A stretch of 64,000 nucleotides of DNA from Malacoraja senta (GCA_038087875.1 CM075991.1:11842001-11906000); one strand, 5' to 3'. Positions 13,501 through 53,100 are shown, counted from the first letter of the stretch. Program-made: numbers and translations. Notes: generated from the letters alone by a model not told the origin.

Positions 13501-16500
13501 TCAGCTCACTAGAGATTTTTTATTCCAATTGCATGGACCAGTATTAGGAGAGGAACACACCCTTCGGCCCACAATGTCCGCACCGAACATGAAGCCAAGT
13601 AAAATGAACCTCCTCCAAATGAGAGTAAATCCAATCCTGAGGATTGCTCTCCATTAGCGCCCAAACCACTGCCATGAGGCTCACCGGCCTATAATCTCCT
13701 GGATTTAAGAAGGATTTTGTTTCTTGCCAGAGAAGGAGCCCAGGGATCACGAGAAGGAGAACGTGCGGCGAATGCGGGAGATCCAGAAAAAATGCAGAGA
13801 GAAGGACCACGAGCGTGAACAGAGCGGCCCCAAACCGGTGAAAGCGTTGTGGAAATCCCACAAGTATGAATCCATTCCATCAAAAGTGATGGCTCGCTTA
13901 CAGGTAAAGGCCCGGCCTAGGTGTGAGAGAAGTTCATGGCAGGCAGGAGAGTAGTGGGAGGCTCCTGAATGAATAGTGAGATGGATAAGGGGTTGGACAG
14001 GCTAGATGCAGGGAGATTGCTCCCGATGTTGGGGAAGTCCAGGACAAGGGGTCACAGCTTAAGGATAAGGGGGAAATCCTTTAAAACCGAGATGAGAAGA
14101 ACTTTTTTCACACAGAGAGTGATGAATCTCTGGAACTCTCTGCCACAGAGGGTAGTCGAGGCCAGTTCATTGGCTATATTTAAGAGGGAGTTAGATGTGG
14201 CCCTTGTGGCTAAAGGGATCAGAGGGTATGGAGAGAAGGCAGGTACGGGATACTGAGTTGGATGATCAGCCATGATCATATTGAATGGCGGTGCAGGCTC
14301 GAAGGGCCGAATGGCCTACTCCTGCACCTAATTTCTATGTTTCTATGTTTCTATAAACTTGCACAAAGCAGAACAGAGTAAATGACTTGTGTGTGGAGTG
14401 GGTGGGCTCCGTATGAAGGGGGATGATGTCGGCAGTAGCTGATGAACATGTATGGAAGCTCTGTGCAAACGTTAGAGAATCCTCCTAGATAGTCCGAAGA
14501 AGTCTGAGGAAGGGTCTCGACCCGAAACAGCACCCATTCCTTCTCTCCAGAGATGCTGCCTGTCCCGCTGAGTTACTCCAGCATTTTGTGTCTATCTTCG
14601 ATTTAAACCGGCATTTCCTTCCTACACAGAGAATCCTCCTCCACCCCCATTGTTGTTGGAGTTATTGGATGTAACTGTGACAAACCTCATTATTATAAGT
14701 CAGTGGAGCCTGGGGCCAAACTGTGCTGTAACTGTGGACTATGTATGGAATTATATTAAATAACTTAAGGAGGAGGAAAAATAAAATATAATGCACCATC
14801 TTCCAGTTCACTATTGTAGAAATCTGACCATCTTTTAAAAAGGTAAACCACATAGTGCTTGAGCAAGCACGCCAGGCAGCATGTGCAGACGGAATGGATA
14901 GGCAACATTTTGGGTGGGAACCTTTCTTCAGACTTTTGCTGATTTAAATAAAAATTGTAGCTGTTAATTCCAACTAAATTCCTCCTGGCATGTCATGATT
15001 GTCACTTTTTTGCGATCAAAGTGGTACACTTTCAGGGTGGCACAGCTGGTAGAGATGCTGCCTCACGATGCCACAGGCCCGGGTTTGATCCTGACATCAG
15101 ACGCTGGCTGTGTGGCGATTGCACGTTCTCTTTGGGGTTTCATCCCAGAGACTTGCAGCTTTGCAGATTAATCGGCCTCTGTATACTACCCCCTAGTGTG
15201 TAGGGTGTGATGCGAAAGTGGGATAACATAGAACTAGTGTGAATGGATGATCGATGGTCGGCCTGGACTCAATGGGCTGAAAGACAAGTTTCCACTTTTT
15301 ATCTCCAAGCCTAAAAAACAAATATTTAAAACTTTTGCACGTAAGGTTTGTGAACCTTATTGCTCTAACTTATGATATTGTATGTTCAAATCTGTTGGTT
15401 AGTGAACAGACATATTATATATTGGTGTATCTCTTATGTCAGGCATATAGAAAGGATGCTGCATCAGTATAGGGACTGCACAGACAACACACCCCAAACT
15501 ATCCAGGACACTAATCTCAAAATGCACTAAGGAAGGGACACACTAATAGGTAGGTTTTCCCTTTATTCATTATCTGGACACTTTAAAACTACATTTTTAG
15601 GAAAATGAACTGGAATTACTCAGTGTGCCAGTCAGCATCTCGGGAGGGAATGGACAAGTGACATTATGGCTTCTTCAGTCTGAAGAAGGGTCCTGACCCG
15701 AAACGTTGCCTGTCCATCCCCTCCAGAGATGCTGCCTGACCCACGGGAATCCTCCAGCACTTTGTGTTTTGCTCCAGATTCCAGCATTGGCAGTCTCCTG
15801 TGTCTCTAGTACTCAGTCATGACTGTAAGTATCACCAGGAGGTCAAATAAGCTGACTACATAGAAAATAGGTGCAGGAGTAGGCCATTCGGCCCCCTCGA
15901 GCCAGCACCGCCATTCAATATGATCCTGGCTGATCATCCAAAATCAGTACCCCGTTCCTGCTTTCCCCCCATACATTGGGGCTGACACCTTGGCTTTCGT
16001 TTCTCTATTTTAATTTCTTCCACAAGATGAGTGTGTCGGAACCTGCAGCATAACTGAGCAGTGCAGAGTGTTCCTTAAATATTACCGAAGGCATTTCCGA
16101 TTTGTATCTGGTCAAAGACAGTCGTAGTGTGTGGGGTGAATTCTTGAATACATGCCTGTAACCAGGTTGCAGACTTTCCCAAAAGCTGACTGATTTATTT
16201 TCTGTCTTTTCTGTCATTTCTCCTCAGGACAACTCACCCCCCAAGCCTTTGGATAATCAGCACTACCTTAAAGCTCACTCGCGATGTGGGACTGGGTCGG
16301 TCCCAAGAGATCCACGTCCCCGAGCACAACCAAAGCAGAGATGTGTGTCGAGGCTCCAGAGGATTCTATCGCAAATGTGAGTGAAATATTGGACAGAACG
16401 CACCAAGTATTTAAACGTAGGTAGACAGAAATGCTGGAGAAACTCAGCGGGTGAGGCAGCATCTATGGAGCGAAGGAATAGGTGACGTTTCGGGTCGAGA

Positions 16501-20373: not shown

Positions 20374-21359
20374 GCAGCTCAGAAAGGTAAAATTCAGGTT
20401 GCAGCAACATTTCTGTTTCTGGTTATTGCTTGGAATAATGGTTATGATGTGAAAGGCTTGGTTGTGATGTGAATGTATTGTATTGTATATCTTTATTGTC
20501 ATTTCCTGAGTATTCGCATACCCAGAGGAAACAAAAAAACGTTCCTCAACCAGTGTCCATTTCAGTGTGCAGTAAAAATGGGGAGAAGAGAGTTGAGGTG
20601 TATGAAAACAAACTTGAATCAGATACCAAATACACAGGACAAGATGTTAAAAATCCAAAGTGCCAAATATCAACTTGCTCCCGGTGGTGATGGGAGCCTT
20701 ATGCACTCACCTATGCTCCTCCGATGTTGAGAAAGGCTAGGCAGATACGTCATTGGGGTTATCAAGTGGGCACCTTTTCACTGGTGCAGCGAGCAGAGCA
20801 GAGACCTGGGATTGATCCTGATCCCAATCCCGAGTGTTGTGGAGTTTACATGATCTTCCTGTGACTGTATGGATTTCTTCCAGGTGCACCTCCCACTCCA
20901 CAAAGACATGAAGGTTAATTGGCTTCTGTAACTACCCCTAGATTGCTGGGAGTGGTTGCAAAAGTGGAATTATTGTGAATGGGTGATCGATGGTTGGTGT
21001 GGATTTGGTGGGCCGAAGGTCCTGTTTCTATGCAGTATCAATCATATTGAATGTAGGTGCTGGCTCGAAGGGCCAAATGGCCTATCCCTGCACCTATTTT
21101 TCTATGTTTCTAATTTCCTACGAAAATTATCTTTTCAAAACTAGTGATTTTGTTCATCACTGAATTAAATTTAGAAGTTTAGATGAAACCTATTTTGTAG
21201 CCAAATTTATAATTTGAATCCTCTGAATTATAGTTTTGTTCTTGTTCCTTTACATTGCAGGCTTTTAAACGGAGACATTTCTGGACTGCAGGAAACAAGT
21301 TGGAGCTACGGCACACTTTGCTTTCTGAATCTGTTGGTAACGTTTCTCACAGACCTGTA

Positions 21360-21365
21360 AATAAA
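21360..21365 (+). terminator. Candidate ENKD1 polyadenylation signal
   Basis: AATAAA 100 nt downstream of a strong acceptor at 21260. Confidence 0.45.
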
Positions 21366-21635
21366 CTGACAGAATATTTTTTTATAATAATTAAATGTTC
21401 ATTTTGTGATTCCAATGTTATTAAATTTATCAATTTTTGAAACAAGTGTTTTTGTTCTTTGAGACCTATAATAAGGGAAATATTTGGATCGTCAAAACTT
21501 CAAAGGAGAGGAGGTTTTTTTGCCTTGTTTATGTAGCATTCCCAGACCATCCTCCTATCCTTGCAGCCCCCTGACTCAATATCAAATTTCCCAACCTCCA
21601 ATAACTTGCTTTCTTTGCCTATATCAGAACTGTGT

Positions 21636-21873
21636 GCGGCATGGTGGCGCAGCGGTAGAGTTGCTGTCTTACAGCGCCAGAGACACGGGTTTGATCCCGA
21701 CCACGGGTGCTGTCTGTACGGAGTTTATACGTTCTCCCCGTGACCTGCGTGGGTTTTCTCCGGGTGTTCTGGTTTCTTCCCACATCCCAAAGGGTTGTAG
21801 GTTAATTGGCTTGGCAGAAATGTAAATTGTCCTGTAGAAGGGCCTGTTTCCGTGCTGTATCTCTAAACTAAAC
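21636..21873 (+). mobile_element. HE1-type V-SINE
   Basis: TGGCGCAGCGG A-box head, V-core, CTAAACTAAAC tail. Confidence 0.85.
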
Positions 21874-22839: not shown

Positions 22840-22961
22840 CCAGAGGCCTGGGCGGGGGCGCGCACGCACGGTTTAAATCCCCGGGCAGCGGGGGCGCGCA
22901 CGCGGCCTAGCGACGCAGCAGAAGCCTGAGCTGACATTGTGACGGCGGTCGCCTGCCCGGG

Positions 22962-23002
<41 letters not shown>

Positions 23003-23047
23003 AAGGAGGCTGCCGTTCGGGCGGGCCTTGCACCGAGAGCCGCCGCC
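22840..23047 (+). promoter_or_regulatory. POLB CpG-island promoter / 5'UTR
   Basis: GC box at 22850-22855; 15-bp direct repeat CGGGGGCGCGCACGC (NRF1-like) at 22853 and 22889; half-CRE TGACG at 22940; good Kozak GCCGCCATGA. Confidence 0.7.
22963..23001 (+). repeat. (GGGACA)6GGG tandem repeat just upstream of the POLB ATG
   Basis: Six exact hexamers giving seven G3 tracts. Confidence 0.95.
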
Positions 23048-23108
23048 ATGAGCAAGAGGAAAGCGCCGCAGGAGTCGCTGAACGAGGGGATCACCGACTT
23101 CCTGATCG
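23048..23108 (+). CDS. POLB: POLB exon 1
   Basis: [20 protein letters not shown]; G|gtaatg donor. Confidence 0.97.
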
Positions 23109-26100
23109 GTAATGGAGGCTGGGAGACAGCGCGTTCAATCCCCTTCCCCTCTCCCCCTCTCCCCCCCCCTTCCCCTCTCTCCTTCCCCTTCCCCTCTCTC
23201 CTTCCCCTTCCCCTCTCTCCTTCCCCTTCCCCTCTCTCCTTCCCCTTCCCCTCTCTCCTTCCCCTTCCCCTCTCTCCTTCCCCTTCCCCTCTCTCCTTCC
23301 CCTTCCCCTCTCTCCTTCCCCTTCCCCTCTCTCCTTCCCCTTCCCCTCTCTCCTTCCCCTTCCCCTCTCTCCTTCCCCTTCCCCTCTCTCCTTCCCCTTC
23401 CCCTCTCCCCCTCCCCTTCCCCTCTCCCCCTCCCCTCTCCCCTTCCCCTCTCCCCCCCTCCCCTCTCCCCCCCTTCCCCTCTCCCCCCCTTCCCCTCTCC
23501 CCCCCCTTCCCCCCCCCCTTCCCCTCTCCCCCCCTTCCCCTCTCCCCCCCATTCCCCGCTCCCCCCTTTCCCCTCTCCCCCTTTCCCCTCTCCCCCCTTT
23601 CCCCTCTCCCCCCTTTCCCCTCACCCCCTCCCTTTCCCCTCTCCCCCTTCCCCTCTCCCCCTCCCCTTCCCCTCTCCCCCCCTTCCCCTCTCCCCCCTTC
23701 CCCTCTCCCCCCCTTCCCCTCTCCCCCCCTTCCCCTCTCCCCCCCTTCCCCTCTCCCCCCTTCCCCTCTCCCCCCCTTTCCCCTCTCCCCCCCCTTTCCC
23801 CTCTTCCCCTTTCCCCTCTCCCCCCTTTCCCTTCCTTCCCCTTTCCCCTCTCCCTCTCCCCTCTCCCCCATTTCCCCCATTCCCCTCCCCCTCTTCCTCT
23901 CTTCTCTCCCTGGGGTAACAGTTGCCCTCACCCCCCACTGCCACTTCTCCCCAGGGTAACGTCTTCCTCCCCCCCTGGGGTAAATTGCCCTCACCCCACT
24001 GTCCCCACTCTCCCCAGGGTAATAGTCATCCTCACCCTCCCCCACTCCCCCACCCTCCTTCTCCCCTGGTTACAGTTACCCCCTCTCCCTGGGGTAACTG
24101 TTGCCCTCAACCCCCCCACTGCCCTCTCTTTGAAACATACCTGGTTGTTTTATTTTGCAGAACTGGCTAACTTTGAGAGGAATGTGAATCGAGCAATGCA
24201 CAAGTACAATGCTTACAGGTAATCCTCACTATCAGTAGCATTGACGTCCGCAAGATCCCAGTTAACAGCTGCATTCTTCCCAGGGTTCCTGACCTAATCA
24301 ACAATCAATGTGGTGGAGGGGGTCAGGCAGCATCTGTGGAGGGAATGGACAGGTGACATTTTGGGTCTGGACCCTCCTTCATACTGATGGGGGGGGGGGT
24401 GGGGAGTAAGCTGGAAAAGAGAGGTAGAGCCGGAGCAAGTGATAGGTGTATGCACTTCAGTTGACTTGGGTCAATGGCTCCTGCATAATATTGGTCCCCT
24501 CAGTAAACCCAGTTCATCACCCCTATCAGGGGGTGCTTCCAATTGGATCCAGAATGATGTTCTGGACAAACAAATGAGTTACTCTAGCAATGGTTCCTAA
24601 TATGAACCACATGATGAGTATACTTCAAACTTTAATTTCACATTTTAATTGGTTTAGTTTATTTAGTTTAGATACAGCCCACCAAGTCCGCACCGACCAG
24701 CGATCCTCGCACATTAACACTATCCTACACACACTAGGGACAATTTACACTTATACCAAGCCAATTAACCTACAAACTTGCATGTCTTTGGAGTGTGGGA
24801 GGAAACCAAAGATCTCGGAGGAAACCCACGCATTCACGGGGAGAACGTACAAACTCCATACAGACAACACCCATAGTCGGGATCGAACCCGGGTCTCCGG
24901 CCCTGCAAGCGCTTAAGGCAGCAACTCTACCGCTGCGCCACCGTGCCGCTGTTGTCCTGTGGTTGCTGGGTTATAAATAGAAATACACTTTCAATCTGAG
25001 TTTGTCATCTGTAAATTAGATTCTTAATTTGCAGTATACCTGCTTTCTATGTGAGGCTCACATGGAAAGGGAGAATGCGTGCAATACAATTTTACAAAAT
25101 TAATACTTTATCGAGGCTTTCTATTCTGCAGAATGATTACCAAAAACAAAGTAGACATTTGGAATGCAAGTTTGTACTTTTTGTTATCTTCTGACAGGAA
25201 AGCAGCGTCAGTTATCGCAAAATATCCAACAATAATCAAGAGTGGTGCAGAAGCTAAAAAACTGGTGAGCATTTCAATACTAAAAAAACATTTTTGTAAC
25301 GTTTCAAAATGTTGTAAACTTTAGTTATTCTTCCCAATATTTGCATAATTTAAAACATCTTAAATGAGTTAAAAAATGACAGGGTATCCGAGGAGTTTTG
25401 TGAGATAGAATGCATTAATTTATATTTGCAATACGTTTTAGGAAGGAGTTGGTGACAGGATTGCAAAGAAGATTGACGAGTTTCTAGCAACAGGAAAGTT
25501 GCAAAAGCTGGAAAAGGTACAGCATGGATTATTTATTCAATTAACCCGTTCGATTGTTAATCACCTGTTTAGATTTATTCCAGATTAATGGTACGGGATG
25601 ATCGAACAATTATCCAAAGTAAGAAATCTATCAGGCGTGAAAAGAAAGCCATGTATGTTTTGCAAAGAAGATCTTCAGTTCACTTGGGTGGATACAAAAA
25701 AGACACAAAATACTGGAGTAACTCAGCGTGACAGGCAACAGCTCTGCAGAGAAGGAATGGGTGACGTCACAGGTCGAGACCCGAAACGTCACCCATTCCT
25801 TCTTTCCAGAGTTGTTGCCTGCCCCGCTGAGTTATAAAGTATTTTGTGTCTATCTTTGGTTTTAACTAGCATCTGCAGTCCTTCCTATACAAAAAAGCAC
25901 TGTACATTTTGAAAAGAGGGTAGTCCACACAACCCCGACCCCATATGTTTACCAGCGGGATTGGTATACTTAAAATCTGTTACTGTTGTGAAATCTTGCT
26001 CTAACTAAATTGATTTCCACATTTTCTATAAATGTATAACTTCAATTTTTTTCAAAATGGTTTAAAAATGAAGAAGGGTCTTGACCCAAAATGTCACCCA

Positions 26101-29100: not shown

Positions 29101-32100
29101 TTCCATTTAAATCTGAAAGGTGAAGTATACCTTTGTAATCAGAGCCTTGCAGCCAATTATTAAAGTTTTAATGTACCTATTGTAATTTCAAGTTGGAGGA
29201 AGTAGTTTTATGGGAATTCATGATTCAGCCAGCTATTTTGTTTTACTCCTTGGTTAAGAAAGTTAGTTTGAACCTGTTAAATCTCCCTGTTGTGCTTTAA
29301 AGGATATGGAGACAAATCTGAAATTATCCACAATAATTGAGCATGAATTTTCCAAATAGATTAACCTTAAAGACTTCAAAATGTTTTACGTTAAGGACAC
29401 AACCTTTGTGTTTAATTTGTTTGCTGATTTGGTACATTGGCTAAAATTGGAGTTGGGGGAAATTTTAATCATTTCATTTCATTTTTTTAGATAGTTTTTC
29501 TTAAATTTGAGCAATTGTGTTGTGCAGGTATTTGCTTGATGTGCTAAAGCCCTCTGGTGGCAATAAAAGGGATAACTAAACAACTTTTAGTTTTGGACAA
29601 TAAGATTATAAGTGATAGGTGGAGAATTAAGCCATTCGACCCATCAAGTCTACTCTGCCAATCAATCATGGCTGATCTATCTCTCCCTCCTAACCCCATT
29701 CTCCTGCCTTCTCCCCATAACCTCTGACAATAACTTAGTCACACTGCACATGTAATAATCTCGGAAATATTTTTCTTGAAATGGATTTCAAAATGGAGGC
29801 TGGGCAGTAACACAACGTTTAATGTGTTACATGGATCGCACAATTATAGTTTGGATCTGAAACTTGAGTTTCTACCTTGTGCTTCATGTTAGTTAGTATA
29901 TTATATGCAGTGCAGGAGGATTGGCGAGATTTGAAGGTACTCCCTTGGTATTGTGGCAAAGTAGTTGTTATTTTTCGTAAATTAACCTACATTTAACCTA
30001 CAGGGGCGACCTATAATAGGCGAGTTCAGATGGAATTGCTTTCCAATTACTACGTGCTCATAGTTATTTTATTGATCCCTGTAGGTATTTTGAGGACTTT
30101 GAAAAGCGAATTCCTCGGACAGAAATGGTGAAAATGCAGGTAAGGCAAAGAGACCTTAAACTGGGTAAGATGTGTAGGAAAGAACTGTAGATGCTGGTTA
30201 AAATCGAAGGTAGACACAAAATGCTGGAGTAACTCAGCAGGACAGGCAGCATCTGTGGAGAGAAGGAATGGGTGATGTTTTGGGTCTCGATTAGAGATAC
30301 CGCGTGGAAACAGGCCCTTCGGCCCACTGAGTCCCCACCGACCAGCGATCCCCACACATTAACACTATCCTACACACACTAGGGACATTTTTTTACATTT
30401 ATATCAAGCCAATTAACCTACAAGCCTGTACGTCTTTGGAGTGTGGGAGGAAACCGAAGATCTCGGAGAAAACCCACGCAGGTCACGGGGAGAACGTACA
30501 AACTCCGTACAGATAGCACCCGGGTTTCTGGCGCTATAAGGCAGCAACTCTACTGCTGAGCCACAGTGCCACCCTTAAACTTTGTAGTTACTTGATTGGT
30601 CTCAATGCTTGGGAGGTTCTGACATAATGGAAGGAATTGCACAAATGCGTTTTATTTCCCCTTCGACCTCTACTGCAATTTTTTTTATCGATAATTATTG
30701 TTCTCTTTTGAAAACTTGTTGAAATTAGTTCTAAGAAGCCGTCAGTCAAATGTTTCCTCATCTTTAGTCCTCATACACATCCTCTGGTTTTTCACCATGA
30801 GCCATTGGAAACTATTTCACAGGTAGACAAAAGTGCTGAAGAAACTCAGCAGGTGCAGCAGCATCTATGGAGCGAAGGAAATAGGCAACGTCTGAAGAAG
30901 GGTTTCGGCCCGAAACGTTGCCTATTTCCTTCGCTCCATAGATGCTGCTGCACCCGCTGAGTTTCTTCAGCACTTTTGTCTACCTTCGATTTTCCAGCAT
31001 CTGCAGTTCCTTCTTAAACACTTGGAAACTATTTCACGCTGCTTATTTAAACCTATCATTATTTTCACACTTGCATCTAATCTCCAGTTAGTCTTCCCCT
31101 GCTGCAAGGAGAATAATCTCAAACTCTCTGGATGATTTATAAAACGCCAATGAATAGTTGGGAATAATGAATCCCTGTAATCATTTAGTAAATCTCTGCT
31201 CTTTAGGGAAAACTGCCACACCATTCCTAAATTTGGTGCTTAGCAATTATCATTCCCTGAATATCTATGTGCCTATCCAGAATCCTATTAAATGGCAGCG
31301 TGTTCCTGGCACACACCACCTTCCTTCTGTGTAAAACTAAAAAACTTGCCCCGCACATCTCTGTTAAACATTGCCTGCACATGATCCCTGCATATCCACG
31401 TAATTTTACCACAGTAGAGTTGAAGTGAATGAAAGATCTGCCACACAGTCACGAGTGTCTCTTCTGCTTCTACTTAGCTTCGTGAATTTTAATTATTTTT
31501 GTCTCTTTTACTCTTTAGGCTATAGCTCTGAGGGAGGTGGAAAAATTCGATTCTAAATATGTCGCCACCGTTTGTGGCAGCTTCAGACGAGGTTGGTACA
31601 TTCTGCTTTCTGCATTAGCAAAATGAAAAATGGCAAATGGAATACTTGCTCTTGTGCCTAAACCAGGATACCATTTGATGATTTTCTTAACTTTTCCTTG
31701 CCTATTTTTTAAATGTTGCCTGCTTTAAAAGTAGATTTTTTTTTTTTTAATGGATCAAATTGCCAAGGATGTGTGCAAATTCACAGTGTGCTGAAGGGGA
31801 CTGGATAAGCTCTCACTGTGGTTGATCGGGGGGCTTTAAAAAACAGGAGAACTTATCACTTGTGATCTTGAGACTTATCCACTCCTCTCAATGTCTCCAT
31901 TTCTACCACATCTGCTCCTAAGATAAGGCTTTCCATCCAAGATGTCTTCTTTTGTTAGTAAACGTGGTTTCCCCTCCCGCTGTCACGGATGGATCCTTGA
32001 ACCATGTCTCCTCCGTGGCCAGTGGTTCTGCTTTTGCTCCCCCTCCCCCCCAGGCGCAACTAGGACAGAGTTCCCCATGTCCTCATTTTTCACCCCACCA

Positions 32101-35100: not shown

Positions 35101-38100
35101 ATGAATCTTCACAACAGCGATGGGTTCTATTTAACCTGACCCCTCGCTTCGTGAATGTTTCGATGAGCTCAAGGAGACAGCTCACCACCACCGTATCGAG
35201 TGGAACTAAGGATGGACAATGTCCAAACCTTCAAAATGAATTTCAAAAAGGTGTTCTGCTCATCATGTTATTCAACCATGCCTTTTTATTTCATTACTAA
35301 TGTATAATTGAGCCTGTCATACCAATTTGATTGGAGTTGAGGTAAATTAGGTCAAATTTTGCAATGCAAGGTCACTAATTTCAAAGCTACTTTCACATGA
35401 CAGCTTTAGGCCATTCTCAATATTGAATGTAGACAAAAATGCTGGAGAAACTCAGCGGGTGCAGCAGCATCTATGGAGCGAAGGAACCTTTTTTCCTTTC
35501 ACTCCATAGATGCTGCTGCACCCGCTGAGCTTCTCCAGCATTTTTGTCTACCTTCGATTTTCCAGCATCTGCAGTTCCTTCTTAAACTCAATATTGCATG
35601 GATTGTTCCAATTCCATTTTCAGGTTTCTTGCATAAATAACTGTCACCTGGATGGTGTCTAGTTTAGTTTTTTAATTGTCACGTGTACCGAGGCAAAGAT
35701 ATTTTGTTGCGTGCTGTCCAGTCAGCGAAAAGACTATACGTGATTAAACTCATCCATCCACAGGTATGCTCGATGATGAGCCAACACCTTTTTGAGATTC
35801 ATTTTGAAGATACAAAGTAAAGGATTTCCCAAGGAGGAGTACATTAACAGAAAAAGAGTGTGAGAAAATTGGCTGGGAAAGAAATCTGACAAAAATGCTG
35901 AGTGACTTAAAAGATTTCCTTTAAACCATTTGGACGGTTTCATGTTAACAACATGCCGTGCAACGTTACCACATTTTGAAATAAATTTGTTTACAATCGT
36001 CGTGGCTACATATGCATTTAATTTTAATCCCACTTCACTAGCCATGGTAAGGAACCAATTCACATCTGACTTTTCATCTCATTAAATTGTGCATAGTAGC
36101 ACCATTATTGTATGTCATTTGATAAATGGGATTCTAGTTTGATCACTGACTTGGCTAATTCAGTCGTGGCGCCACGAGTGGACACAGCAAGGAAACTAAA
36201 TCCAGCCTTGCTAGGCTACTTACTAGAATGCCAGAAGAAGATTGGAGCAAAATGGTTTGGACAAATGGGAATGGTGCATAGTTGGTGAAACTAACTGAGA
36301 AGTTGAAAATATTTCGACGAGCATTAATGACAGACCTAATGGTTGAATTTGATCAAACTGCCCCTTCACTGAATGAGACAGCTGCATTTTAGCACCATGG
36401 AAGGTGTTTAGTTCAGTTTAGTTTATTGTACGTGTACCGAGCTACAGTGAAATGGTTTTGTTGCGTGCTATCCAGTCAGCAGAAAGACAATACATGATTA
36501 CAATCGATCCATTCAGTGTATAGACACCTGATAAGGGAATAACGTTTAGTGCAATTAAAAGCCAGCAAAGTCCGATTAAGGGTAGTCTGACGGTCACCAG
36601 TGAGGGAGATAGTAGTTCAGGACTGCTTGCTTGTTGTGGTAGGATAATTCAGTTGCCTGATTACAGCTGGGAAGAAGTGCTGCCCATTAGAAGTGATATC
36701 TTGACCTGTCATTTAATGATCTCAGCAAACCTCTGTGTGAAGGCCTTTTACTGGTGGATTTCTGCCTGACCTAACATTGTAGACACTGATAGTAGGAATG
36801 GGTGACTCTTCCCAGGTCTGAAGAAGGGGCTCGACCCGAAACGTCAGCCATCCCTTCTATCCAGAGATGCTGCCTGTCCCTTTACTTGGTGAGAAATAAA
36901 AGTGAAACTGTGATTGTCTACAAGATGCCAACTGTCAGTTTGAAAATTGTGGGAGGGAGGGACGGAGGGAGGGCTGAAGGAAGGGTTGAGCTCAAATGAC
37001 AGGTTCAGAAAATCCTAGATCGGGGTTGGCAATGATGTGATGAATTTTGATTTCAGCAAAGTGGACATGAGTCACAGAGTTGTGTGGAAGCAGGCCCTTT
37101 GAGCCATTGAGAAGGAGGAGCTATTAGATATCAGGGTGACATATTGCCTGGCATGGATGATATCTCTCTCAGTTGCCATGGCAAACAAGGGAGCCCTTAC
37201 AAAGATCTTTGCTGGATTGGTGTGGATGAGAAAAAGTTTGGCATGGACTCGATGGGCCGAAGGGCCAGTTTATGCGCTGTGCAATTCCATGACTCTATAC
37301 TGAAGCACAAACTCCGCCGTTTGAGAAGTCAGGAACTCAGTTGTTCAGACAGCAGTTGCAGAGGGAATGGGCAGACAACATGAGGTGCTGGAGGACCTCA
37401 GCATGTCAGGCAGCAACTGTGCAGGCTTCATTCCCTCCCTCCCTAGATGCTGACTGTCCCTATGTGATCCTCCAGTACTTGGTTTTTTTGCTCAAGATTC
37501 AGGCATCTGCAGTTTTTTGTGTCTCTTTATTTCTGAATATGCAGTGTTGTCTTTTAATATAAAATAATCAATAAATGCAGCAAAATATCTCTCTTGAATA
37601 GCAAGTTTAGCCTGATCTTTGCCAATTTCCATTGACTTAGTTTATCCATGAACATGCTGTTCTTTCATTTGTATTTTATTTATATTGGTGGGGACGCTGA
37701 GACCACAGGATTTATATTATTCCCTTTCAAATATACTTTCTCACAACAAAACAGCTGCTAATCAAGCAAGTGAGAAAATAAACAGTATTCTCACATTTTG
37801 ATGCGATTATGTTAACCTATATATAGAAATGCAACACAATTAGACAATAGACAATAGGTGCAGGAGTAGGCCATTTGGCCCTTTGAGCCAGCACCGCCAT
37901 TCAATGTGATCATGGCTGATCATCCCCAATCAGTACCCCGTTCCTGCCTTCTCCCCATATCCCCTGACTCCGCTATTTCTAAGAGCCCTATCTAGCTCTC
38001 ATGTTTTCCAGAACAGAAAAAATAGAAAATATTCACCAGTTCTAGCCATTTATGTCGCAGTTGAAATAGAATAACAGATTTAACATTTAGACTGATAGCC

Positions 38101-44100: not shown

Positions 44101-47100
44101 GGGTATAGGATAGTGTTAATGTGCAGGGATTGCTGGTTGGCGTGGACCCGGTGGGCCGAATGGGCCTGTTTCCATGCTGTATCTCCAAACTAAACTAAAC
44201 AAAATTGATATCTCTCCAATAACGCTTACCAATTTCTACTGACACACCAATATAATGCGATGTATTGGAATGTATCACAGGTTGATATGGCAATTGTTTG
44301 GTCCAACAAAAAATGGCAGAGTTGTGAAAGCAGCAGGTCCACCTTTAGATGTGTAGTCCAAACTTTAAATGTGAAGCATTCATTAGCCATTTGAGTTACT
44401 TCTGTTTACCCTTTCTGCTTTCAATTTTGTATTCAGCTTGCTTTTAATTCTGCTACTTCTCATTCACTCCATATGTTCTATCATGGCTGGAATCTATTTT
44501 GCAATACCTTTTTGAAGGCCTTAGAATCAATTCCTGTTTTCAATAGAGTTGTGGTTCCGAACTTTTACAGTTATGCTGGAGGTTCAACTTTTATAATTAG
44601 TGGTTTTTCTTTATTGGGATGCATCGCAGCTTGGTTTGGGGACAGCTCCATCCAAGACTGCTAGAAATGGCAGAGAAATGTGGATGCAGCCCAGACCATC
44701 ACACAAACCAACCTACCCTCCCTTCCGTTGGCAAGGTCACCAGCATAATCAAGGACGAGTTGAACTCCCTCTTCTCCCCTCTCCCATCAAGCAAGAGGTA
44801 CCAAAGTGTGAAAACGCACCCCATTCAGCGACAGTTTCTTCCCAGCTGTTATGAAGCAACTGAACCACCCTACTGGATAAGTAGACAACTGGGATTCTTT
44901 AGACTTTAGACAGCACAGTGGCGCAGCAGTAGAGTTGCTGCCTTGCAACGCCAGATCCCCAGGTTCGATCCTAACCACGGGTGCTGTCTGTATGGAGTTT
45001 GTACATTCTCTCTGTGACCACATGGGTTTTCTCCGGGCACTCCGATTTCCTCCTACATTCCAAAGACATAGAGGTTTTCATGTTATTAGGCTTCTGTAAA
45101 TTGTCCCTCGTGGGTAGGATATGAAACTGGGATAACATGGAAACATAGAAACATAGAAACATAAAAAATAGGTGCAGGAGTAGGCCATTCGGCCCTTCGA
45201 GCCTGCACCGCCATTTGATATGATCATGGCTGATCATCCAACTCAGTATCCCATCCCTGCCTTCTCTCCATACCCCCTGATCCCTTTAGCCACAAGGGCC
45301 ACATCTAACTCCCTCTTAAATATAGCCAATGAACTGGCCTCAACTACCTTCTGTGGCAGAGAATTCCACAGATTCACCACTCTGTGTAAAAAATGATTTC
45401 CTCATCTCGGTCCTAAAAGTCTTCCCTCTTATCCTTAAACTGTGACCCCTAGTTCTGGACTTCCCCAACATCGGGAATAATCTTCCTGCATCTAGCCTGT
45501 CCAACCCCTTAAGAATTTTGTAAGTTTCTATAAGATCCCCCCTCAGTCTTCTGAATTCCAACGTGTACAAGCCGAGTCTATCCAGTCTTTCCTCATATGA
45601 AAGTCCTGCCATCCCAGGAATCAGTCTGGTGAACCTTCTCTGTACTCCCTCTATGGCAAGAATGTCTTTCCTCAGATTAGGAGACCAAAACTGTACGCAA
45701 TACTCCAGGTGTGGTCTCACCAAGACCCTGTACAACTGCAGTAGAACCTCCCCGCTCTTATACTCAAATCCATTTGCTATGAATGCTAACATACCATTTG
45801 CTTTCTTCACTGCCTGCTGCACCTGCATTCCTACTTTCAATGACTGGTGTACCATGACACCCAGGTCTCGTTGCATCTCCCCTTTTCCTAATCGGCCACC
45901 ATTCAGATAATGGTCTACTTTCCTGTTTTTGCCACCAAAGTGGATAACCTCACATTTATCCACATTATACTGCATCTGCCATGCCTTTGCCCGCTCACCC
46001 AACCTATCCGTCACCTTGCAGCCTCCTAGCATCCTCCTCACAGCTAACACTGCCCCCCAGCTTCGTGTCATCCGCAAACTTGGAGATGTTGCATTCAATT
46101 CCTTCATCCAGATCATTAATATATATTGTAAATAGCTGGAGTCCCAGCACTGAGCCTTGCGGTACCCCACTAGTCACTGCCTGCCATTCTGAAAAGGACC
46201 CGTTTACCCCTACTCTTTGCTTCCTGTCTGCCAGCCAGTTCACTATCCACATCAATACTGAACCCCCAATACCATGTGCTTTAAGTTTGTATGCTAATCT
46301 CTTATGTGGGACCTTGTCGAAAGCCTTCTGAAAGTCCAGATATAACACATCCACTGGTTCTCCCTTATCCACTCTACTAGTTACATCCTCGAAAAATTCT
46401 ATAAGATTCGTCAGACATGATTTACCTTTCATAAATCCATGCTGACTTTGTCCAATGAACTCACCACTTTCCAAATGTGCTGCTATCCCATCTTTAATAA
46501 CTGATTCCAGAATTTTCCCCACCACCGATGTTAGACTAACTGGTCTGTAATTCCCCGTTTTCTCTCTCCCTCCCTTTTTAAAAAGTGAAATTACATTAGC
46601 TACCCTCCAGTCCTCAGGAACTACTCCAGAGTCTAAAGAGTTTTGAAAAATTATCACTAATGCATCCACTGTTTCTGCGGCTACTTCCTTAAGTACTCTG
46701 GGTTGCAACTTATCCGGCCCTGTGGATTTATCGGCCTTTAATCCATTCAATTTACCTAACACCACTTCCCGGCTAACCTGGATTTCACTCAGTTCCTCCA
46801 TCTCATTTAACCCCCGGTCCCTTGCTATTTCCGGCAGATTATTTATGTCTTCCTTAGTGAAGACAGAACCAAAGTAATTATTCAATTGGTCTGCCATGTC
46901 CTTGTTCCCCATGATCAATTCGCCTGTTTCTGACTGCAAGGGACCTTGTGCTTGGGTGATCATTGGCCTGCGCAGACTCGGTGGGCCCAAGGGCTTGTTT
47001 CCATGCTGCATCTCTAAAATAAAATAAAATAAATTCCAAAGTAATGTTTATATTCAAATGCACTAGACTCTTTATAATTTCTTGGGAACTTTATTTTCAA

Positions 47101-50100
47101 AAAGAAAATAAATCTCTCTGAAAGGAGAAACAAAGTCAACCTGTATAGGAAGGAACTGTTTAAACCGAAGATAGACACTCAGCGGGACAGGCAGCATCTC
47201 TGGAGAAAAGGGATGGGTGACGTTTCGGGTCGAGACCCTTTTTCAGACTGATCAGATTCAGTCTGAAGAAGGTTCTCGACCCAAAACATCACCCATTCCT
47301 TCTCTCCAGAGATGCTGCCTGTCCCGCTGAGTTGCATTTTGTGTCTAACAAAGTCAATATTTCAGGTTAAGATCAATCACCTAGTTACATTAATTCTTTT
47401 GCTCTGACCGCAAGGCTGATGGCCTGATGATTTTTTCCAGCATCTTCGGTTTATCTCAGATTTGCCGCTTTCTTGCGGCAGCTGAGGAAACACATAATCT
47501 GCCACAGGCAATGATGGTCCAATTCTATACTGCCATCGTAGAGTCTGTCCTCACCTTCTCCATCATGGTCTGGTTTGGCTCAGCCACCAAGCACGACATC
47601 CGGAGGCTGCAACGAATCGTTCGATCAGCGGAGAAGATTGTTGGCTGCAACCTTCCCCCCCCACCATCGATGAACGGTACACTGCAAGGGCCAGGAAGCG
47701 AGCGGGTAAGATCGTCTCTGCCCCTCTCACCCTGGCACTTCCCTTTGGAAGGCGACTCCGGACTGTCAAAGCTGCCACAGCCAGCCATAAAAACAGCTTT
47801 TTTCCACGAGCAGTAGCACTACTCAATAACCAAAAGTCTGTAGCCTCCTTTTGCTCTGGTATTTTATTTCATTCACATGTTTAAACTATAATGTTTATTC
47901 TGAATGTTTTAATGTTTAATGTTTTGTTCTTAATTGTTTACTGTATGTCGTGTTGTTACTTGCGAGCGGAGCACCAAGGCAAATTCCTTGTATGTGTACA
48001 TACTTGGCCAATAAACTTCATTCATTCATTCATTAGTTCATTAATTAATTCATTCATTCATTCATCTGCAGTGTTTTGCTTTTGAAAAGGTTTGAAATTC
48101 ATGTTGCTGCCAAGCCCAAAGGCATGAGATGATTTATGGAGAACTTGAAAAAGAATATCTACCTGGCCGTCTGCTCCTGTAAAAAACTTTTGTTTTTTTA
48201 TTATTGAAGTGGGTGGGGTGAAGATCAATGAAAACGAAATGATCAGTACAGCTGCTGACATGCCTGAGGCTATGGCTGCACTCCCATTAAAACCTTTTGG
48301 TTTTATGCCATATGCATTGCCCTCCATAATGTTTGGGACAAATACCCATCATTTATTTATTTGCCTCTGTACTCCACAATTTGAGATTTGCAATAGAAAA
48401 AAATCACATGTGGTTAAAGTGCACATTGTCAGATTTTAATTAAGGCCATTTTTATACATTTTGGTTTCACCATGTAGAAATTACAGCAGTGTTTATACAT
48501 AGTTTCCCCATTTCAGGGCACCATTATGTTTGGACACAGCAATGTCATGTAAATGAAACTAGTCATGTTTAGTATTTTGTTGCAAATCCTTTGCATGCAA
48601 TGACTGCTTGAAGTCCGTGAGTCTTGGACATCAACATTTGCTGGGTGACTTCTCTGGTGCTGCTCTGCCAAGCCTGTATTGCAGCCATCTTTAGCTTATG
48701 CTTGTTTTGGGGGCTAGTCCCCTTCAGTTTTCTCTTCATCATATAAATTCAGATCGGGTGATTGACTTCACCACTCAAGAATTGACCATTTTTTAGCTTT
48801 GAAAAACTCCTTTGTTGCTTTAGCAGTGTGTTTGGGATCATTGTCTTGCTGTAGAATTAACTGCCGGCCAATGAGTTTTGAGGCATTTGTTTGAACTTGA
48901 ACAGATAGGATGTGTCTATACACTTCAGAATTCATTATGCTACTACCATCAGCAGTTGTATCATCAATGAAGATAAGTGAGCCAGTACCATCAGCAGCCA
49001 TACATGCCCAGGCCATAACACCCCCACCACCGTGTTTCACAGATGAAGTGGTATGCTTTGGATCTTGGGCAATTCATTCTCTCCTTCATACTTTGCTCTT
49101 GCCATCACTCTGATATAAGTTAATCTTCATCTCATCTGCCCACAAGACCTTTTTTCCAGAACTGTGGTTGCTCTTTTAAGTACTTCTTGGCAAACTGTAA
49201 CCTGGCCATCCTATTTTTGCAGCTAACCAGTGGTTTGCATCTTGCAGTGTAGCCTCTGTATTTCTGTTCATGAAGTCTTCAGCGGACAGTGGTCATTGAC
49301 AAATCCACACCTGTCTCCTGAAGAGTGTTTTTGATCTGTCGGACAGGTGTTTGGGGATCTTTCTTTATTATAGAATTCTTCTGTCATCAGCAGTGGAGGT
49401 CTTCCTTGGCCTGCCAGTCCCTTTGCGATTAGTAAACTCACCAGTGCTCTCTTTCTTCTTAATGATGTTCCAAACAGTTCATTTTGGTAAGCCTAAGGTT
49501 TGGCTGATGTCTTTAACAGTTTTATTCTTGTTTTTCGGTCTCATAATGGCTTCTTTGACTTTCATTGGCACAACTTTGGTCCTCACGTTGATGAATAGCA
49601 ATAAAAGTTTCCAAAGGTGATGGAAAGACTGGAGGAAAGACTAGGTGCTGAGAGCTCTCTTATACCTGCGTTAAGTTGGCAATTAAACACACCTGAGCAA
49701 TTACAAACACTGGTGAAGCCATGTGTCCCAAACATTATGATGCCCTGAAATGGGGGGGGACTGTGTAAACACAGCTGTAATTTCTACATGGTGAAACCAA
49801 AGTGTATAAAAATGGCATTTAATCAAATCTGACAATGTGCACTTTAACCACATGTGATTTTTTTTCTATTACATATCTCAAATTGTGGAGTACAGAGGCA
49901 AATAAATAAATGATGGGTCTTTGTCCCAAACATTATGGAGCGCACTGTATGCTGGATGTGGTTCATGTATAATTATGCAATTTAATTACAGGGCTGTTTA
50001 CTTGAAATTGGTTTTAGATGGCGTTAAAAGAGGAAATTTGCATAAATATTTTGAGTGTTGATGTGAGGGTTGTGGCTGTTACAAAATGTGCTTTGAGGTC

Positions 50101-53100
50101 TGCCAATTTGGATTACCATAAACCAGCTTAATGACCGCAGTCAGCACGTGAAGAAAGAAACGGTTATTCTGATTTATGTAGTCTCCATAAGGTGCTTGTG
50201 ATGTTCCTTCAACAGCAGAGAAATTATTTGTTCTCATCCTCTGTCTGAAGAAGGGTCTCGGCCCGAAACGTCACCTATCCATGTTCTCCAGCACTCGGTG
50301 TCCGTTTGTGTATTAACCAGCATCTGCAGTTCTTTGTTAGGGCATAAAGTCCTATGGGCTGCACAGTGGATGTGAATGCAGTCCTGAGTAACGTGCCCTT
50401 CCTGGGCCAACACTTACTCACCTTTCTCTTAACACGAGCGAGAACTGATAATGTCACAGCACAGCACAGCAGCAGGCCCTTCAGCCTCAATATCCATGTC
50501 CCCATTGTACCCATCCATGCTAATCTCAGTCATCCACATTAAGTCCGTAGCCTTCTCTGCCTTGGCGATTCAGGTATTTGTCTCTTGATTCTTCCTAAAT
50601 ATTGTGTGTGTGTGTGCATGTGTCTGCGCGTCTCTGTGCCCGTCTCTGCGGGGTCTGTGCGTGTGTGTGTGCCTCTCTGTGCCCGTCTCTGCGGGGTCTG
50701 TGCGTGTGTGTGTGTCTGCGTGTATACCTTCACCATCTCTAGAACAACATATTTCAGACTGCAACAATCCTCTGTAACAAAAAGTCCCCTCGCATTGGTG
50801 TGACGCCTGTATGGTGGTGAGTAGTCGCCCAAAGAGTCGTACCTTTTTCTGGTCGCCGCTGGATTTTCAACACGTTGAAAATTTTCCGACGACCTGCAGC
50901 GACTATGACGGGTGCCGGCAGTGGCCGAATTAAACACGTAAGTGGGACAGGCACATAAGCATGCAACAACCCTGTAGGTATGCACGCCTGTAGCAGTGAT
51001 GAGGAAATGAGATTTGAGAGCTACATACCATGAAGAAGGATAGGAAGGGCTTTCACAATAGAAAAAAGAATTGCAGGATGCGGTCTCTCCAAACCCTGTG
51101 AATGGTATGCTTTGTAGGAAGCAGGAGACTTCTAGCTAATTGTATGCAGGTCTCAGTTTGGCCTGATAATTGATTTAATTGTTACTTTGAACTCAGCAGC
51201 TACTTCTTGAAAGTAGAGGTTTAATGAAACGCAATGCTTGCAGCTGTAATTTACAGACTCGATGAAAAATCTTGTACAAATTGTTAAAGGTAATTTTACA
51301 TGCACTGACGTTATTTTTGAAGTACCTGAATACATAGGTGTCAAATATAATTGATTTAATGTTGTACATGTAACTGCCCCAAACCAATTTCATTTAGTAT
51401 CTCAGAACAGAAAGAAGTTTTTTATTCCTTTAATCATTTTAAGCTTTTAACGTATTGGTTAAAAATGTAAAAATCCATCAAAGTTTTCAAATCTTCATGT
51501 TAATATTCTTCAGAGCAATAATATAACGGTGGAGTTCAAAATACTTGACCTCGCTGTAAGGAGCTGAATGGTGCTGGTCTGGCCTAGAATTGTCAGTGGC
51601 GCAGTGGTAGAACTGCTGCCTCACAGCGCCAGAGACCCAAGTTCGACCCTGACTATGGATGCTGTCTGTGCGGAGTTTATATGTTCTCCCTGGGTTTCCT
51701 CCCACATTCCCAAAACGTGCGGGTTTGTAGGTTAATTGGCCCCAGTGTGTAGGATGCAAAAGTGGGATAACATAGAACTAGTGTACGGAAATAGACACAA
51801 AATGCTGGAGTAACTCAGCGGGACAGGCAGCATCTCTGGAGAGAAGGAATGGGTGACGTTTCGGGTCGAGACCCTTCTTCACACTGATGCAGAAGTGCAG
51901 TGTAGTTCGGTGTGGTGTCGTTCAGACTAGTGTATGGAAGATGGATGGTCGGAGTGGACTCAGTGGGCCAAAGGGCCTATTTCCATGCTGTATCTCTAAC
52001 ACTAATCTACCGGAGAAGAGAACTAATCTCACTTGCCTTCTGTACCGGTACCGGTTGGACAGTGAAGTCTGAGTGACGACTAGGTTTCAGCGATGCAGGG
52101 CTCAACATTTGTTCTCTGATATTTAAAAACACAAAATCTTTAAAATAACTAAAACATCAAAAAAGAAAACTCATCTTTCTCTCCCCGTTCAAACCCATCA
52201 GAGTCTTTAGAATCTCAGATCTAAATTGTGTCTGAGTGTTGATACTGCTGTGGATTGGAGGGTAGTGATGAATTTGCTGCTATATATTAGTCAATATGTT
52301 TTGGAATTCTGCAATGGTAAATTCAGTCCAAAACTTACTCAAATGTAAACAGTTAACAGTTGCCAGTAATATTTAGCCCAATCATTTAAGCGATGGATCC
52401 ACCAGAATCACTGCGATCCAGACCACATTTATCTGATGGAGAAAAGGAATGGGTGACGCTTCGGGTCGAGACCTTCTTCAGAATGAGGGTCAGGGGAGAG
52501 GGAAAATAGAGATATGAAAAGTGTTCCTTTTTCCGCACTGAATCTCCAAACTAAACTAAACTAAAAGAAAGTGACAAAATAGCTAGCCTGCCATTCTTGG
52601 CTTCACGTTTCTGGCAACTTGTTCGATAAGTTTTTTGCTAAAATGAAAATTTTGCAAAACCCTGAAATAAAATGATTTTTAATCATATCCATACACTATC
52701 ACTTTTTAATTGTAACCTATTTCTCAGCGGAAAGAGCCATGACCACTTTTTGTAATAAAAGTGGATGCCGGGTGGTATGGATTGTGGTTAATTGTAACTG
52801 AGCTAAATTGAATACAGTGTTATTAGTGGTGAGGCAGCTGCTGCCTGTTGGTCTGTTTAGAATGAACAATTATCAGATAGTTGTGCATCTTTGAAGTGCT
52901 GGTTGAGACGTTTGCCTGAAGCTTTGATAGTGGAGGCATCGATCAGGCAATAGTCTGTTTTACTACCTTGTCTGAATATTGATTGCCCGTTGAATCACAG
53001 CATTGCAACTTGCAGTCTCTGCTTCCTTGCTTACCTGCTGGAGCAGCCGGCCCAAGAAGTCTTTTTGTGACAGCTGCTTTGGAGACACCGATGGGGAAGT

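Follow-up and report, generated by a model that had tools for sequence, protein, structure and literature searches.

A Penelope-type minimal hammerhead motif probably heads the terminal unit of a massively spread Penelope-like element in a skate genome

The commonest repeat in the window (the whole 64 kb stretch of skate DNA analyzed here) includes a sequence that resembles a hammerhead ribozyme. In all probability (about 85%), this is a minimal hammerhead motif of the Penelope type that heads the 3'-terminal unit of a massively spread Penelope-like element (PLE), with inserted copies that decay neutrally and are likely to be inert in POLB, the gene in which some of them reside. The motif is of an already known kind, the minimal hammerhead of a PLE, and belongs to an element family that litters the skate genome.

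The hammerhead motif and its surviving cores

The family consensus CTGAAGA-A-GGGTC..GACCC-GAAA-CG-T-C has 12 matches with at most three mismatches on the two strands of the window, compared with 0 in 100 shuffles, which bears out the hammerhead-like consensus that the first-pass annotation of this DNA had reported at these positions. Its description as the commonest repeat of the window is confirmed by a profile search, which finds 74 arms covering 10% of the bases. The core is reached by 27 of these 74 arms, 22 of which carry at least one inactivating change, whereas the remaining five are intact. The same five cores are found in the 64 kb window by a strict descriptor (CUGANGA, 0–1 extra nt, stem II of at least 3 bp, GAAA, NN, U, H) that has a chance expectation of 0.067 per window (~1e-4 for one 128 nt consensus); they start at 5145, 15680, 30892, 36818 and 50245, all on the + strand. 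Four of them (15680, 30892, 36818 and 50245) had been recognized earlier as whole-core copies on that strand, and the core at 5145 (+), where positions 15.2/16.2 are non-palindromic, is a fifth.

The catalytic boxes (C3-U4-G5-A6-N7-G8-A9, G12-A13-A14, A15.1, U16.1 and H17) are present both in the family consensus and in the five copies. The extra A previously noted after A9 is there as well, unpaired between A9 and 10.1, with model position 10 being A in 30 of 32 arms (94%). Helix II has the consensus GGGU/ACCC with a 4 nt loop, and G10.1-C11.1 is found in 5/5 intact copies. Helix III is indeed reduced to the palindrome ACGT, as had been proposed: the 15.2-16.2 palindrome A-CG-U is seen in the consensus and in 4/5 intact copies, and U16.1 and C17 are present in the motif. 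Helix I consists of 1–2 contiguous bp in the consensus (ATCAGT versus ACCYAT) and in all five intact copies, and this shortness counts against the preferred explanation. The first reading had passed over the fact that no intact copy has more than 2 bp in this helix.

The stem II variants that had been taken for compensatory changes are rejected as such, being one-sided transitions to G.U. The non-consensus cells of stem II include 35 broken, 14 one-sided and 2 double changes, so that the variation among copies represents decay, not covariation.

The terminal unit of a Penelope-like element

The motif occupies the first 30 nt of a 100–130 nt repeat unit that is the 3'-terminal part of a PLE. 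At three independent loci, the unit lies 104–200 nt 3' of the stop of an RT + GIY-YIG ORF, and the three agree in the order of ORF end, pyrimidine-rich linker and unit. Two of these loci come from other chromosome records, one with the stop at 4711, the unit start at 4823 and a linker of 111 nt (L001), the other with the ORF end at 6040, the unit start at 6241 and a linker of ~200 nt (L002); the genomic evidence consists of the one 64 kb window and these two further loci, apparently from the same assembly. The ORF end is joined to the unit start also in public contigs of other runs.

In the window, the C-terminal end of the PLE ORF (the end of the GIY-YIG region) maps to 32584–32838 (+), with the stop expected near 32830; phmmer gives 57 hits for this segment, all with the matched part at the C-terminus of the hit protein, and tblastn agrees. 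In P0002, RVT_1 (E 5.6e-19) is followed by a weak GIY-YIG and then by the C-terminus that matches the window, and in P0025, P0003 and P0043, a weak GIY-YIG is located directly upstream of the shared C-terminus, all the GIY-YIG matches in the hit proteins falling below the cut-off of Pfam. The ORF stop is separated from the hammerhead unit by a pyrimidine-rich linker that is variable among copies (32839–32942, +) and has a summed contig depth 100–1000-fold below that on both sides. The full terminal unit with its tail (32943–33072, +; nhmmer model positions 1–128) follows directly 3' of the PLE ORF, and its core is dead (G12 to A). Further remnants in the window are a PLE reverse-transcriptase fragment at 45904–46312 (−; tblastn with P0002 residues 5–140, the RVT_1 region), an ORF fragment at 6226–6426 (+; tblastn with P0003, P0025, P0035 and P0043) that corresponds to the protein part just before and overlapping the weak GIY-YIG matches, and another ORF fragment at 31877–32156 (+; tblastn with P0035 residues 117–212 and P0018) upstream of a POLB exon.

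The PLE architecture is known here from such RT/EN fragments, the unit ends and the three loci where ORF and unit are linked. Judging from this sequence arrangement, a canonical PLE (RT with a C-terminal GIY-YIG) has the unit as its 3' end. The location 3' of the PLE ORF at three loci, together with the features listed for metazoan PLE hammerheads by Cervera and De la Pena 2014, supports the earlier assignment of the motif, which by these marks is a Penelope-type minimal type I hammerhead.

Structure of the insertions

Unit insertions in the window are strongly truncated at the 5' end. Their 3' ends show two modes, at model positions ~96–104 and 123–128, and this difference of ~30 nt (the PLE 'tail') divides the arms into 32 that have the tail and 33 that do not. 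Head-to-head inverted pairs (n=19) with variable junctions make up roughly half of the insertions, 13 of the 19 being tailed on one arm only; it had escaped the first reading that half of the copies have the segment as one arm of a long inverted repeat. Target-site duplications of 9–16 bp flank the pair as one unit in 10 of the 16 pairs checked, and because there is one duplication per inverted pair, each hairpin corresponds to one integration event. PLEs can form pseudo-LTRs through partial head-to-tail tandems. Two tandems occur in the window, both decayed (4468–4665, − strand, and 62028–62266), and no intact head-to-tail tandem of the unit is present within the 64 kb. Many copies begin at TCA|GTCTGAAG, and none of the arms detected by the profile search of the window starts at model position 31, the predicted cleavage site.

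The intact core at 30892–30919 is at the tip of a hairpin (head-to-head) insertion (30821–31021, +) that has a fold of −117 kcal/mol (z=−19), a target-site duplication at 30805–30820 / 31022–31037 and a tail on the right arm alone. The core at 15680–15707 is part of an older, diverged head-to-head pair (15599–15798, +; loop II CT, H17 = U). The core at 36818–36845 is found in a 3'-truncated unit (36816–36880, +), sense in a POLB intron, where stem II is down to 3 bp and helix I to 1 bp, and the core at 50245–50272 in a solo unit with an internal deletion (50243–50339, +; helix I of 2 bp), also sense in a POLB intron. The core at 5145–5172, intact save for the non-palindromic positions mentioned above, belongs to a tailless solo unit that starts exactly at C3 (5144–5253, +) and is flanked by the direct repeat GAAATCAAT.

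Both arms contain the whole motif in the head-to-head pair at 47149–47350, which has a 12 nt spacer and a flanking 11 bp duplication and in which both cores (47220–47246, −, and 47263–47289, +) are mutated; in the pair at 59503–59710, the motif is reached by both arms, both decayed. The head-to-head insertion at 2928–3140 has a core at 3047 with G12 changed to C and a 16 bp target-site duplication (2909–2924 / 3139–3154). In the hairpin insertion at 33330–33520, the turn falls in loop II, so that the CUGANGA box is missing; those at 25668–25883 and 56659–56857 are of the same type, and the hairpin insertions at 34369–34549 and 35420–35584 have a deeper truncation of the tip.

The inverted pairs probably form during PLE integration; according to published work, both DNA strands are cut and extended by the PLE enzyme, which starts reverse transcription at two internal sites. 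The common start at TCA|GTCTGAAG may coincide with the start of the template RNA, TCAGT being similar to an initiator motif. Snap-back of the reverse transcriptase at the GC hairpin of stem II, or its stalling there, could explain why 5' ends cluster at this stem. Whatever its nature, the role of the motif would lie in the PLE life cycle; a published hypothesis for PLE hammerheads is protein-assisted processing of pLTR-containing transcripts.

Decay of the cores within the POLB locus

The core is conserved no more than its flanks in young copies, one of the two outcomes that the first-pass annotation had jointly set against its own reading: the non-CpG mismatch after insertion is 7.7% in the core versus 7.5% in the flank (p=0.88), and 44% of the young copies have a mutation at G12, a CpG site. 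Between subfamilies A and B, 0 of the 30 motif positions differ versus 9 of the 68 flank positions (p=0.053, borderline). The hammerhead motif appears to be kept in the source elements and to decay neutrally once inserted; with the decay of the cores running at the neutral rate, selection at the host level is absent.

Two POLB exons, for residues 178–207 (32304–32393, +) and 257–295 (58213–58329, +) of DNA polymerase beta, are on the + strand, and therefore, the cores at 30892, 36818 and 50245 are sense to POLB. The latter two are located between the two confirmed exons, and 30892 lies just upstream of the 32304–32393 exon and is intronic if an exon lead at ~25.2 kb holds. The claim that all intact copies are sense to host transcripts stands insofar as the + strand carries all five, with three of them sense to POLB, but the bias is weak, with one-sided p values, all post hoc and from the window copies alone, of 0.037 (5/5) and 0.078 (4/4) versus a 15+/12− background and of 0.25 for the three in POLB. 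The intact copies are 6–14 kb apart.

Folding and covariance models

Although the catalytic boxes of the skate motif are like those of the Rfam hammerhead families (Hammerhead_1, Hammerhead_3, HH9, HH10 and Hammerhead_II), these models have no match at the gathering score in the whole 64 kb window and none even at E up to 10 in the 141 nt stretch 50200–50340. The Rfam hammerhead models call for a genuine helix III and for more base pairs in helix I. Energy-based folding does not favor the hammerhead fold: the −117 kcal/mol stem of hairpin copies swallows helix III, solo copies fold no better than shuffles, and the ACGU:ACGU dimer helix III is absent from cofolding. Given these negative results, an active ribozyme is unsupported by either approach. 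The five intact copies lack a usable helix I as well as a tandem partner, and two of them (30892 and 15680) are locked in long hairpins. Most likely, they have no effect in POLB pre-mRNA, and the intronic ones would be decaying junk, not working ribozymes.

Alternative explanations

The unit might exist elsewhere in head-to-tail arrays, as non-LTR retrozymes that descend from the PLE terminal repeat and yield small circular RNAs through processing by the hammerhead, the copies in the window being their dead monomer offspring. Joints of tail end to unit start, with 5–36 intervening letters, indeed occur in contigs of 'RNA?' runs from two organisms and of another run, the type of which is unrecorded, where they are compatible with tandem DNA or circles; the window holds two decayed tandems, and a preprint (Li et al. 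2026) describes non-LTR retrozymes from PLE terminal repeats in its one chondrichthyan. Nevertheless, such an origin is unlikely: the joints come from an assembled very-high-copy repeat and may be assembly paths or ordinary partial tandems of PLEs, the runs are labeled 'RNA?' and possibly include DNA, the window has no intact tandem, and no copies start at model position 31. Somewhat less probable still is that the hammerhead likeness is vestigial or coincidental, and the 30 nt segment never cleaves, serving as a promoter/initiator or as a GC hairpin for the reverse transcriptase. TCA|GTCTGAAG is where most copies start, both in the window and across thousands of public contigs, and nothing upstream of it is shared (the loose ends agree at 0.35–0.39), so that the template RNA may lack the 5' strand of helix I. 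The 2 bp helix I, the lack of an Rfam match and the unsupportive folds point the same way, and hammerhead-free PLE clades proliferate well, the function of the hammerhead being unclear (Craig 2021, PMC8557442). However, a chance match to the descriptor is expected at ~1e-4 for one consensus, the similarity to PLE hammerheads goes beyond the boxes to the extra nucleotide, G10.1-C11.1 and the palindromic CG, the motif occupies the usual position of the PLE hammerhead, 3' of the ORF in the terminal repeat, and an Anolis PLE hammerhead cleaves, as confirmed by C3/G8 controls.

The first-pass annotation had envisaged the intact sense copies as a functional retrozyme-like system in which two copies would pair in cis via the ACGU helix III and cut the POLB intron, altering splicing or releasing small or circular RNAs. 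The five intact cores are all on the + strand, three of them sense in POLB, PLE hammerheads are thought to work as dimers via a palindromic helix III, and contigs of the 'RNA?' runs contain head-to-tail joints of unit, linker and unit at a depth of up to ~790. Even so, such a system is highly improbable, given the weak, post hoc strand bias (p 0.037–0.25), the helix I of 1–2 bp, the long hairpins that lock 30892 and 15680, the cofolding without the dimer helix III, the neutral-rate decay of the core and the 6–14 kb between intact copies; furthermore, cleavage by PLE hammerheads in vitro is poor even in dimeric form (PMC4209133), and the one from Anolis, for which cleavage with C3/G8 controls has been reported, depends on the PLE protein and has a site at which no RNA-seq reads end (Frangieh 2024, PMC11167929). 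With helix III swallowed and no cofolded dimer, the cutting of POLB pre-mRNA in cis by two intronic copies is unsupported and unlikely, and the notion of a retrozyme-like system does not fit the window, where the copies consist of PLE ends that are dispersed and 5'-truncated or inverted, with only two decayed tandems. The preferred explanation remains a PLE hammerhead at the head of the terminal unit, with copies that decay after insertion.

Comparison with known systems

Minimal hammerhead motifs of metazoan PLEs are reportedly the subject of Lunse et al. 2017. The skate motif is like these motifs in the type I layout, the CUGANGA and GAAA boxes, the unpaired nucleotide between A9 and 10.1, G10.1-C11.1, a helix III without a loop that is the palindrome ACGU alone, the location in a terminal repeat 3' of the RT/GIY-YIG ORF, and the massive dispersal as single truncated copies with nearby opposite-strand pairs. 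It differs from them in the length of the helices, with 2 bp (GU/AC or GU/GC) in helix I, compared with the usual 4–5 bp, and 4–5 bp in helix II, compared with 6–8 bp (Cervera and De la Pena 2014, PMC4209133), the Penelope element of Drosophila virilis having the only motif reported with a 2 bp helix I (PMC4209133).

Animal non-LTR retrozymes, whose defining features are tandem arrays and circular RNAs (de la Pena et al. 2020, PMC7229834; Li, Clavereau and Pollet 2026 preprint), resemble the skate family in that their units are short and non-autonomous, contain a type I hammerhead and come from PLE terminal repeats, and head-to-tail joints are seen in the public contigs; in contrast to these retrozymes, the copies in the skate window are dispersed or inverted.

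With canonical EN+ PLEs (Penelope/Poseidon, Neptune), the skate family shares an ORF with RT plus a C-terminal GIY-YIG, a hammerhead in the terminal repeat, and two 3' ends, which would fit reverse transcription that starts at two internal sites. It also shows the PLE hallmarks of strong 5' truncation, an adjacent inverted 5'-truncated copy and a 30–40 bp tail often at one end only (Craig 2021, PMC8557442; Frangieh 2024, PMC11167929). Unlike in these PLEs, the inverted structure in the skate is cut down to two arms of 100–130 nt that make up a compact hairpin of ~200 bp, and the family is extremely dense, accounting for 10% of the window.

A hammerhead-like motif heads the commonest repeat

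The first-pass annotation had placed a minimal hammerhead at the heart of the window's commonest repeat and named four intact copies, at 15680, 30892, 36818 and 50245. The sequences at these places agree with its wording, and the abundance of the repeat is borne out by a profile search that yields 74 arms (35 on + and 39 on −), together accounting for 10% of the bases. The hammerhead-like segment makes up the first 30 nt of a 100–130 nt unit. Its 27 nt consensus has 12 matches at ≤3 mismatches (both strands), compared with none in 100 shuffles. A strict descriptor (CUGANGA, 0–1 extra nucleotide, stem II of at least 3 bp, GAAA, two nucleotides, U, H) is matched by the same four copies and by one more at 5145; all five lie on the + strand, and 0.067 matches per window are expected from resampled sequence. 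Positions 24–223 are 200 N, an assembly gap or a masked stretch.

Beyond the catalytic boxes, the hammerheads of metazoan Penelope-like elements (PLEs) have four recurrent features (Cervera and De la Pena 2014, PMC4209133), three of which can be checked on a single sequence. The unit consensus has a nucleotide between A9 and 10.1, a G10.1–C11.1 pair and a palindromic 15.2–16.2; the fourth feature, covariation-rich families, was not seen among the window copies. Helix I is short: in the consensus, ATCAGT upstream of C3 and ACCYAT past the cleavage site form 2 bp, two mismatches and 2 bp, and in the five intact copies the contiguous helix is only 1–2 bp. No hammerhead was matched in an Rfam scan of the whole window at the gathering threshold or in a permissive scan (E up to 10) of 50200–50340; the sole weak matches, algC, HgcC and MIR856, are attributed to chance. 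Because of the short helix I and the lack of an Rfam match, the sequence is classed as a minimal hammerhead motif of the PLE type whose helix I is unusually short, and as a putative rather than a demonstrated ribozyme.

The repeat belongs to a Penelope-like element

An open reading frame segment at 32584–32838 reads through without stops, and a search of 1.8 billion proteins returned 57 that match it at their C-termini. The window has more PLE ORF fragments at 6226–6426, 31877–32156 (+) and 45904–46312 (− strand). The window's fragments are too short and broken for Pfam, which returned nothing useful on them, and the link to PLEs is therefore drawn via homologues; ESM Atlas gave only a weak GIY-YIG lead on the ORF end. 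In one homologue, P0002, RVT_1 is followed by a GIY-YIG match (weak, below the Pfam cut-off) and then by the C-terminus matched by 32584–32838, and three further matching proteins show a weak GIY-YIG just upstream of the shared C-terminus. At the locus of P0002 (L001), which is on a different chromosome record, the ORF stop at 4711 is followed by a 111 nt pyrimidine-rich linker and then, at 4823, by a unit whose core is intact. The order is the same at a third locus (L002), where the linker is ~200 nt, and the ORF end is joined to the unit start in public contigs of other runs as well. The element is a canonical EN+ PLE and the motif belongs to the PLE minimal hammerheads. The commonest repeat of the window is thus explained as ordinary PLE debris, so that no host ribozyme function is needed to account for it.

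The fragments at 31877–32156 and 32584–32838 straddle the POLB exon at 32304–32393 (residues 178–207) on the + strand; they have the same orientation and are collinear, corresponding to residues 117–212 and 318–392 of one matching protein, P0035. They may be two coincidental insertions or something odder. At 3001–6460 of L002, the public assembly has a C-type lectin-domain gene model (P0056) whose predicted protein extends over the PLE ORF end, linker and hammerhead unit, probably an annotation artefact caused by the PLE repeat.

Structure and origin of the insertions

Full copies are ~200 bp long and consist of two inverted arms with an unpaired ~30 nt tail on one side, bracketed by direct repeats of 9–16 bp. 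In the head-to-head copies at 47149–47350 and 59503–59710, the opposite arm carries the exact reverse complement of the motif. The window holds 19 head-to-head pairs, in 13 of which the tail is confined to one arm, and 37 solo arms. The 3' ends of the arms are bimodal, falling at model positions ~96–104 (33 arms) and 123–128 (32 arms), and the 5' ends concentrate at three model sites: 1–2, 11 (the turn inside the palindromic stem II) and 18–24 (the 3' side of stem II). Inverted arms flanked by direct repeats could be read as a MITE, or a DNA transposon with terminal inverted repeats; this reading is rejected given the unpaired tail that follows the arms on one side, the long, variable target-site duplications and the continuity of the unit with a PLE ORF. 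Faithful copying of a hairpin master element is less likely, since the tip junctions vary between pairs.

In thousands of contigs, homology breaks off upstream of the boundary between TCA and GTCTGAAG (loose-end agreement 0.35–0.39), and therefore most copies genome-wide begin there. We infer from this sequence pattern that the usual template RNA would have its 5' end at the boundary. An unrelated repeat at 49800–49950 reaches a summed contig depth of 1e4–1e5 or more in 4/4 public runs, those of other organisms included, and is probably a very abundant SINE-like family.

Near-perfect inverted repeats of 70–100 bp lie within POLB introns at 30821–30985 (+), and also at 33330–33520, 56659–56857 and 2928–3140. 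If transcribed, such repeats would give long double-stranded RNA, on which RNA editing or small-RNA pathways could plausibly act. In the annotation of elasmobranch introns, the ~200 bp hairpins are likely to be miscalled as microRNAs or ribozymes.

Decay of inserted copies

Two young subfamilies comprise 18 and 12 arms, with mean pairwise divergence of 13% and 16%, respectively. The excess conservation of the core over the flanks that the first-pass annotation had made a test of its reading does not appear in these young copies: within subfamilies, 7.7% of non-CpG positions are mutated in the core vs 7.5% in the flanks (p=0.88), and the CpG site containing G12 is lost in 44% of the copies. The same annotation had taken stem II variants as compensatory; the non-consensus cells comprise 35 broken pairs, 14 one-sided G.U changes and only 2 double changes, and these variants are therefore ordinary transitions. 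Judged by their substitutions, inserted copies decay neutrally. The two subfamily consensuses are identical across the 30 nt motif and differ at 9 of the 68 flank positions (Fisher p=0.053), and older, diverged copies retain the catalytic boxes though the flank changes. There is a modest sign of constraint on the motif in the source elements.

Proposed cleavage in host introns and a possible retrozyme alternative

The POLB exons on the + strand (32304–32393 and 58213–58329), together with further exon leads, put the copies at 36818 and 50245 in POLB introns and the copy at 30892 in a probable POLB intron, all three in sense orientation. As the first-pass annotation had noted for its four copies, the intact cores (5/5) lie on the + strand; the bias is weak and post hoc (one-sided p=0.037, given that 15 arms on + and 12 on − reach the core; 0.078 for the four copies originally named and 0.25 for the three in POLB). 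The first-pass annotation had further proposed that two intronic copies pair in cis and cut the POLB pre-mRNA. The hairpin copy at 30835–30975 folds at −117 kcal/mol (z=−19) with ACGU paired in cis, which gives a two-way, not a three-way, junction; solo copies are no more stable than shuffled sequence when folded, with the purine box pairing to a downstream CCUUCU run. On cofolding two copies, an ACGU:ACGU helix III never formed, and energy folding of the five intact copies as monomers and dimers gave no hammerhead-compatible minimum-energy structure; given how unstable PLE hammerheads are known to be, this result is not conclusive. Even dimeric PLE hammerheads show almost no activity in vitro (Cervera and De la Pena 2014), and the Anolis PLE hammerhead requires the PLE protein, with no RNA-seq reads ending at its site (Frangieh et al. 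2024, PMC11167929). The folding results and these published data thus argue against the proposal and make cleavage of POLB pre-mRNA by intronic copies unlikely.

The unit might also live as a non-LTR retrozyme, with head-to-tail arrays transcribed and then cut by a dimeric hammerhead into circular RNAs of ~150–170 nt, and intact cores preferentially surviving sense in introns, where they would act on, or be tolerated by, the pre-mRNA. 'RNA?'-flagged runs of two other organisms, and one run whose type is not recorded, give contigs in which the tail end is joined back to the unit start, with 5–36 intervening letters and depth up to ~790; in the 'RNA?'-flagged runs, 50332–50338 is joined to 50239–50245, and 33072–33074 to 32939–32947. 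Such joints could come from PLE partial tandems, from retrozyme arrays or from small circular RNAs, and contigs cannot separate the three. None of the window copies begins at model position 31, where cleavage is predicted. Taken as a whole, this extension of the PLE reading is very improbable. A degenerate mini-tandem at 4468–4665 (−) contains four hammerhead-like cores 22–44 nt apart, followed by a normal unit; all four are mutated, and they are the only cores in the window near enough to dimerise.

Comparison with known Penelope-like elements

The element and its hammerhead are of a well-known kind, to which the skate family adds a member. The literature searched holds no description of this PLE family in skates; a 2026 preprint (Li et al.) describes PLE-derived retrozymes in one chondrichthyan. 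The skate motif differs from other PLE minimal hammerheads in its very short helix I; the Drosophila virilis element is the only one with a reported 2 bp helix (Cervera and De la Pena 2014). The window offers a compact and clearly resolved set of PLE integration products from a cartilaginous fish, with ~200 bp hairpin pairs that are each flanked by a single target-site duplication, a tail on one arm only and junctions clustered at the stem II hairpin. The structural features of the unit agree with those of PLE insertions, namely heavy 5' truncation, a neighbouring inverted copy that is itself 5'-truncated, a 30–40 bp tail that is often present at just one end, and terminal repeats that contain hammerheads (Craig et al. 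2021, PMC8557442). Reverse transcription by the PLE enzyme begins at two internal sites, which accounts for the tail, and the enzyme cuts and extends both DNA strands (Frangieh et al. 2024); the skate insertions fit both two-site internal initiation and cleavage of both strands.
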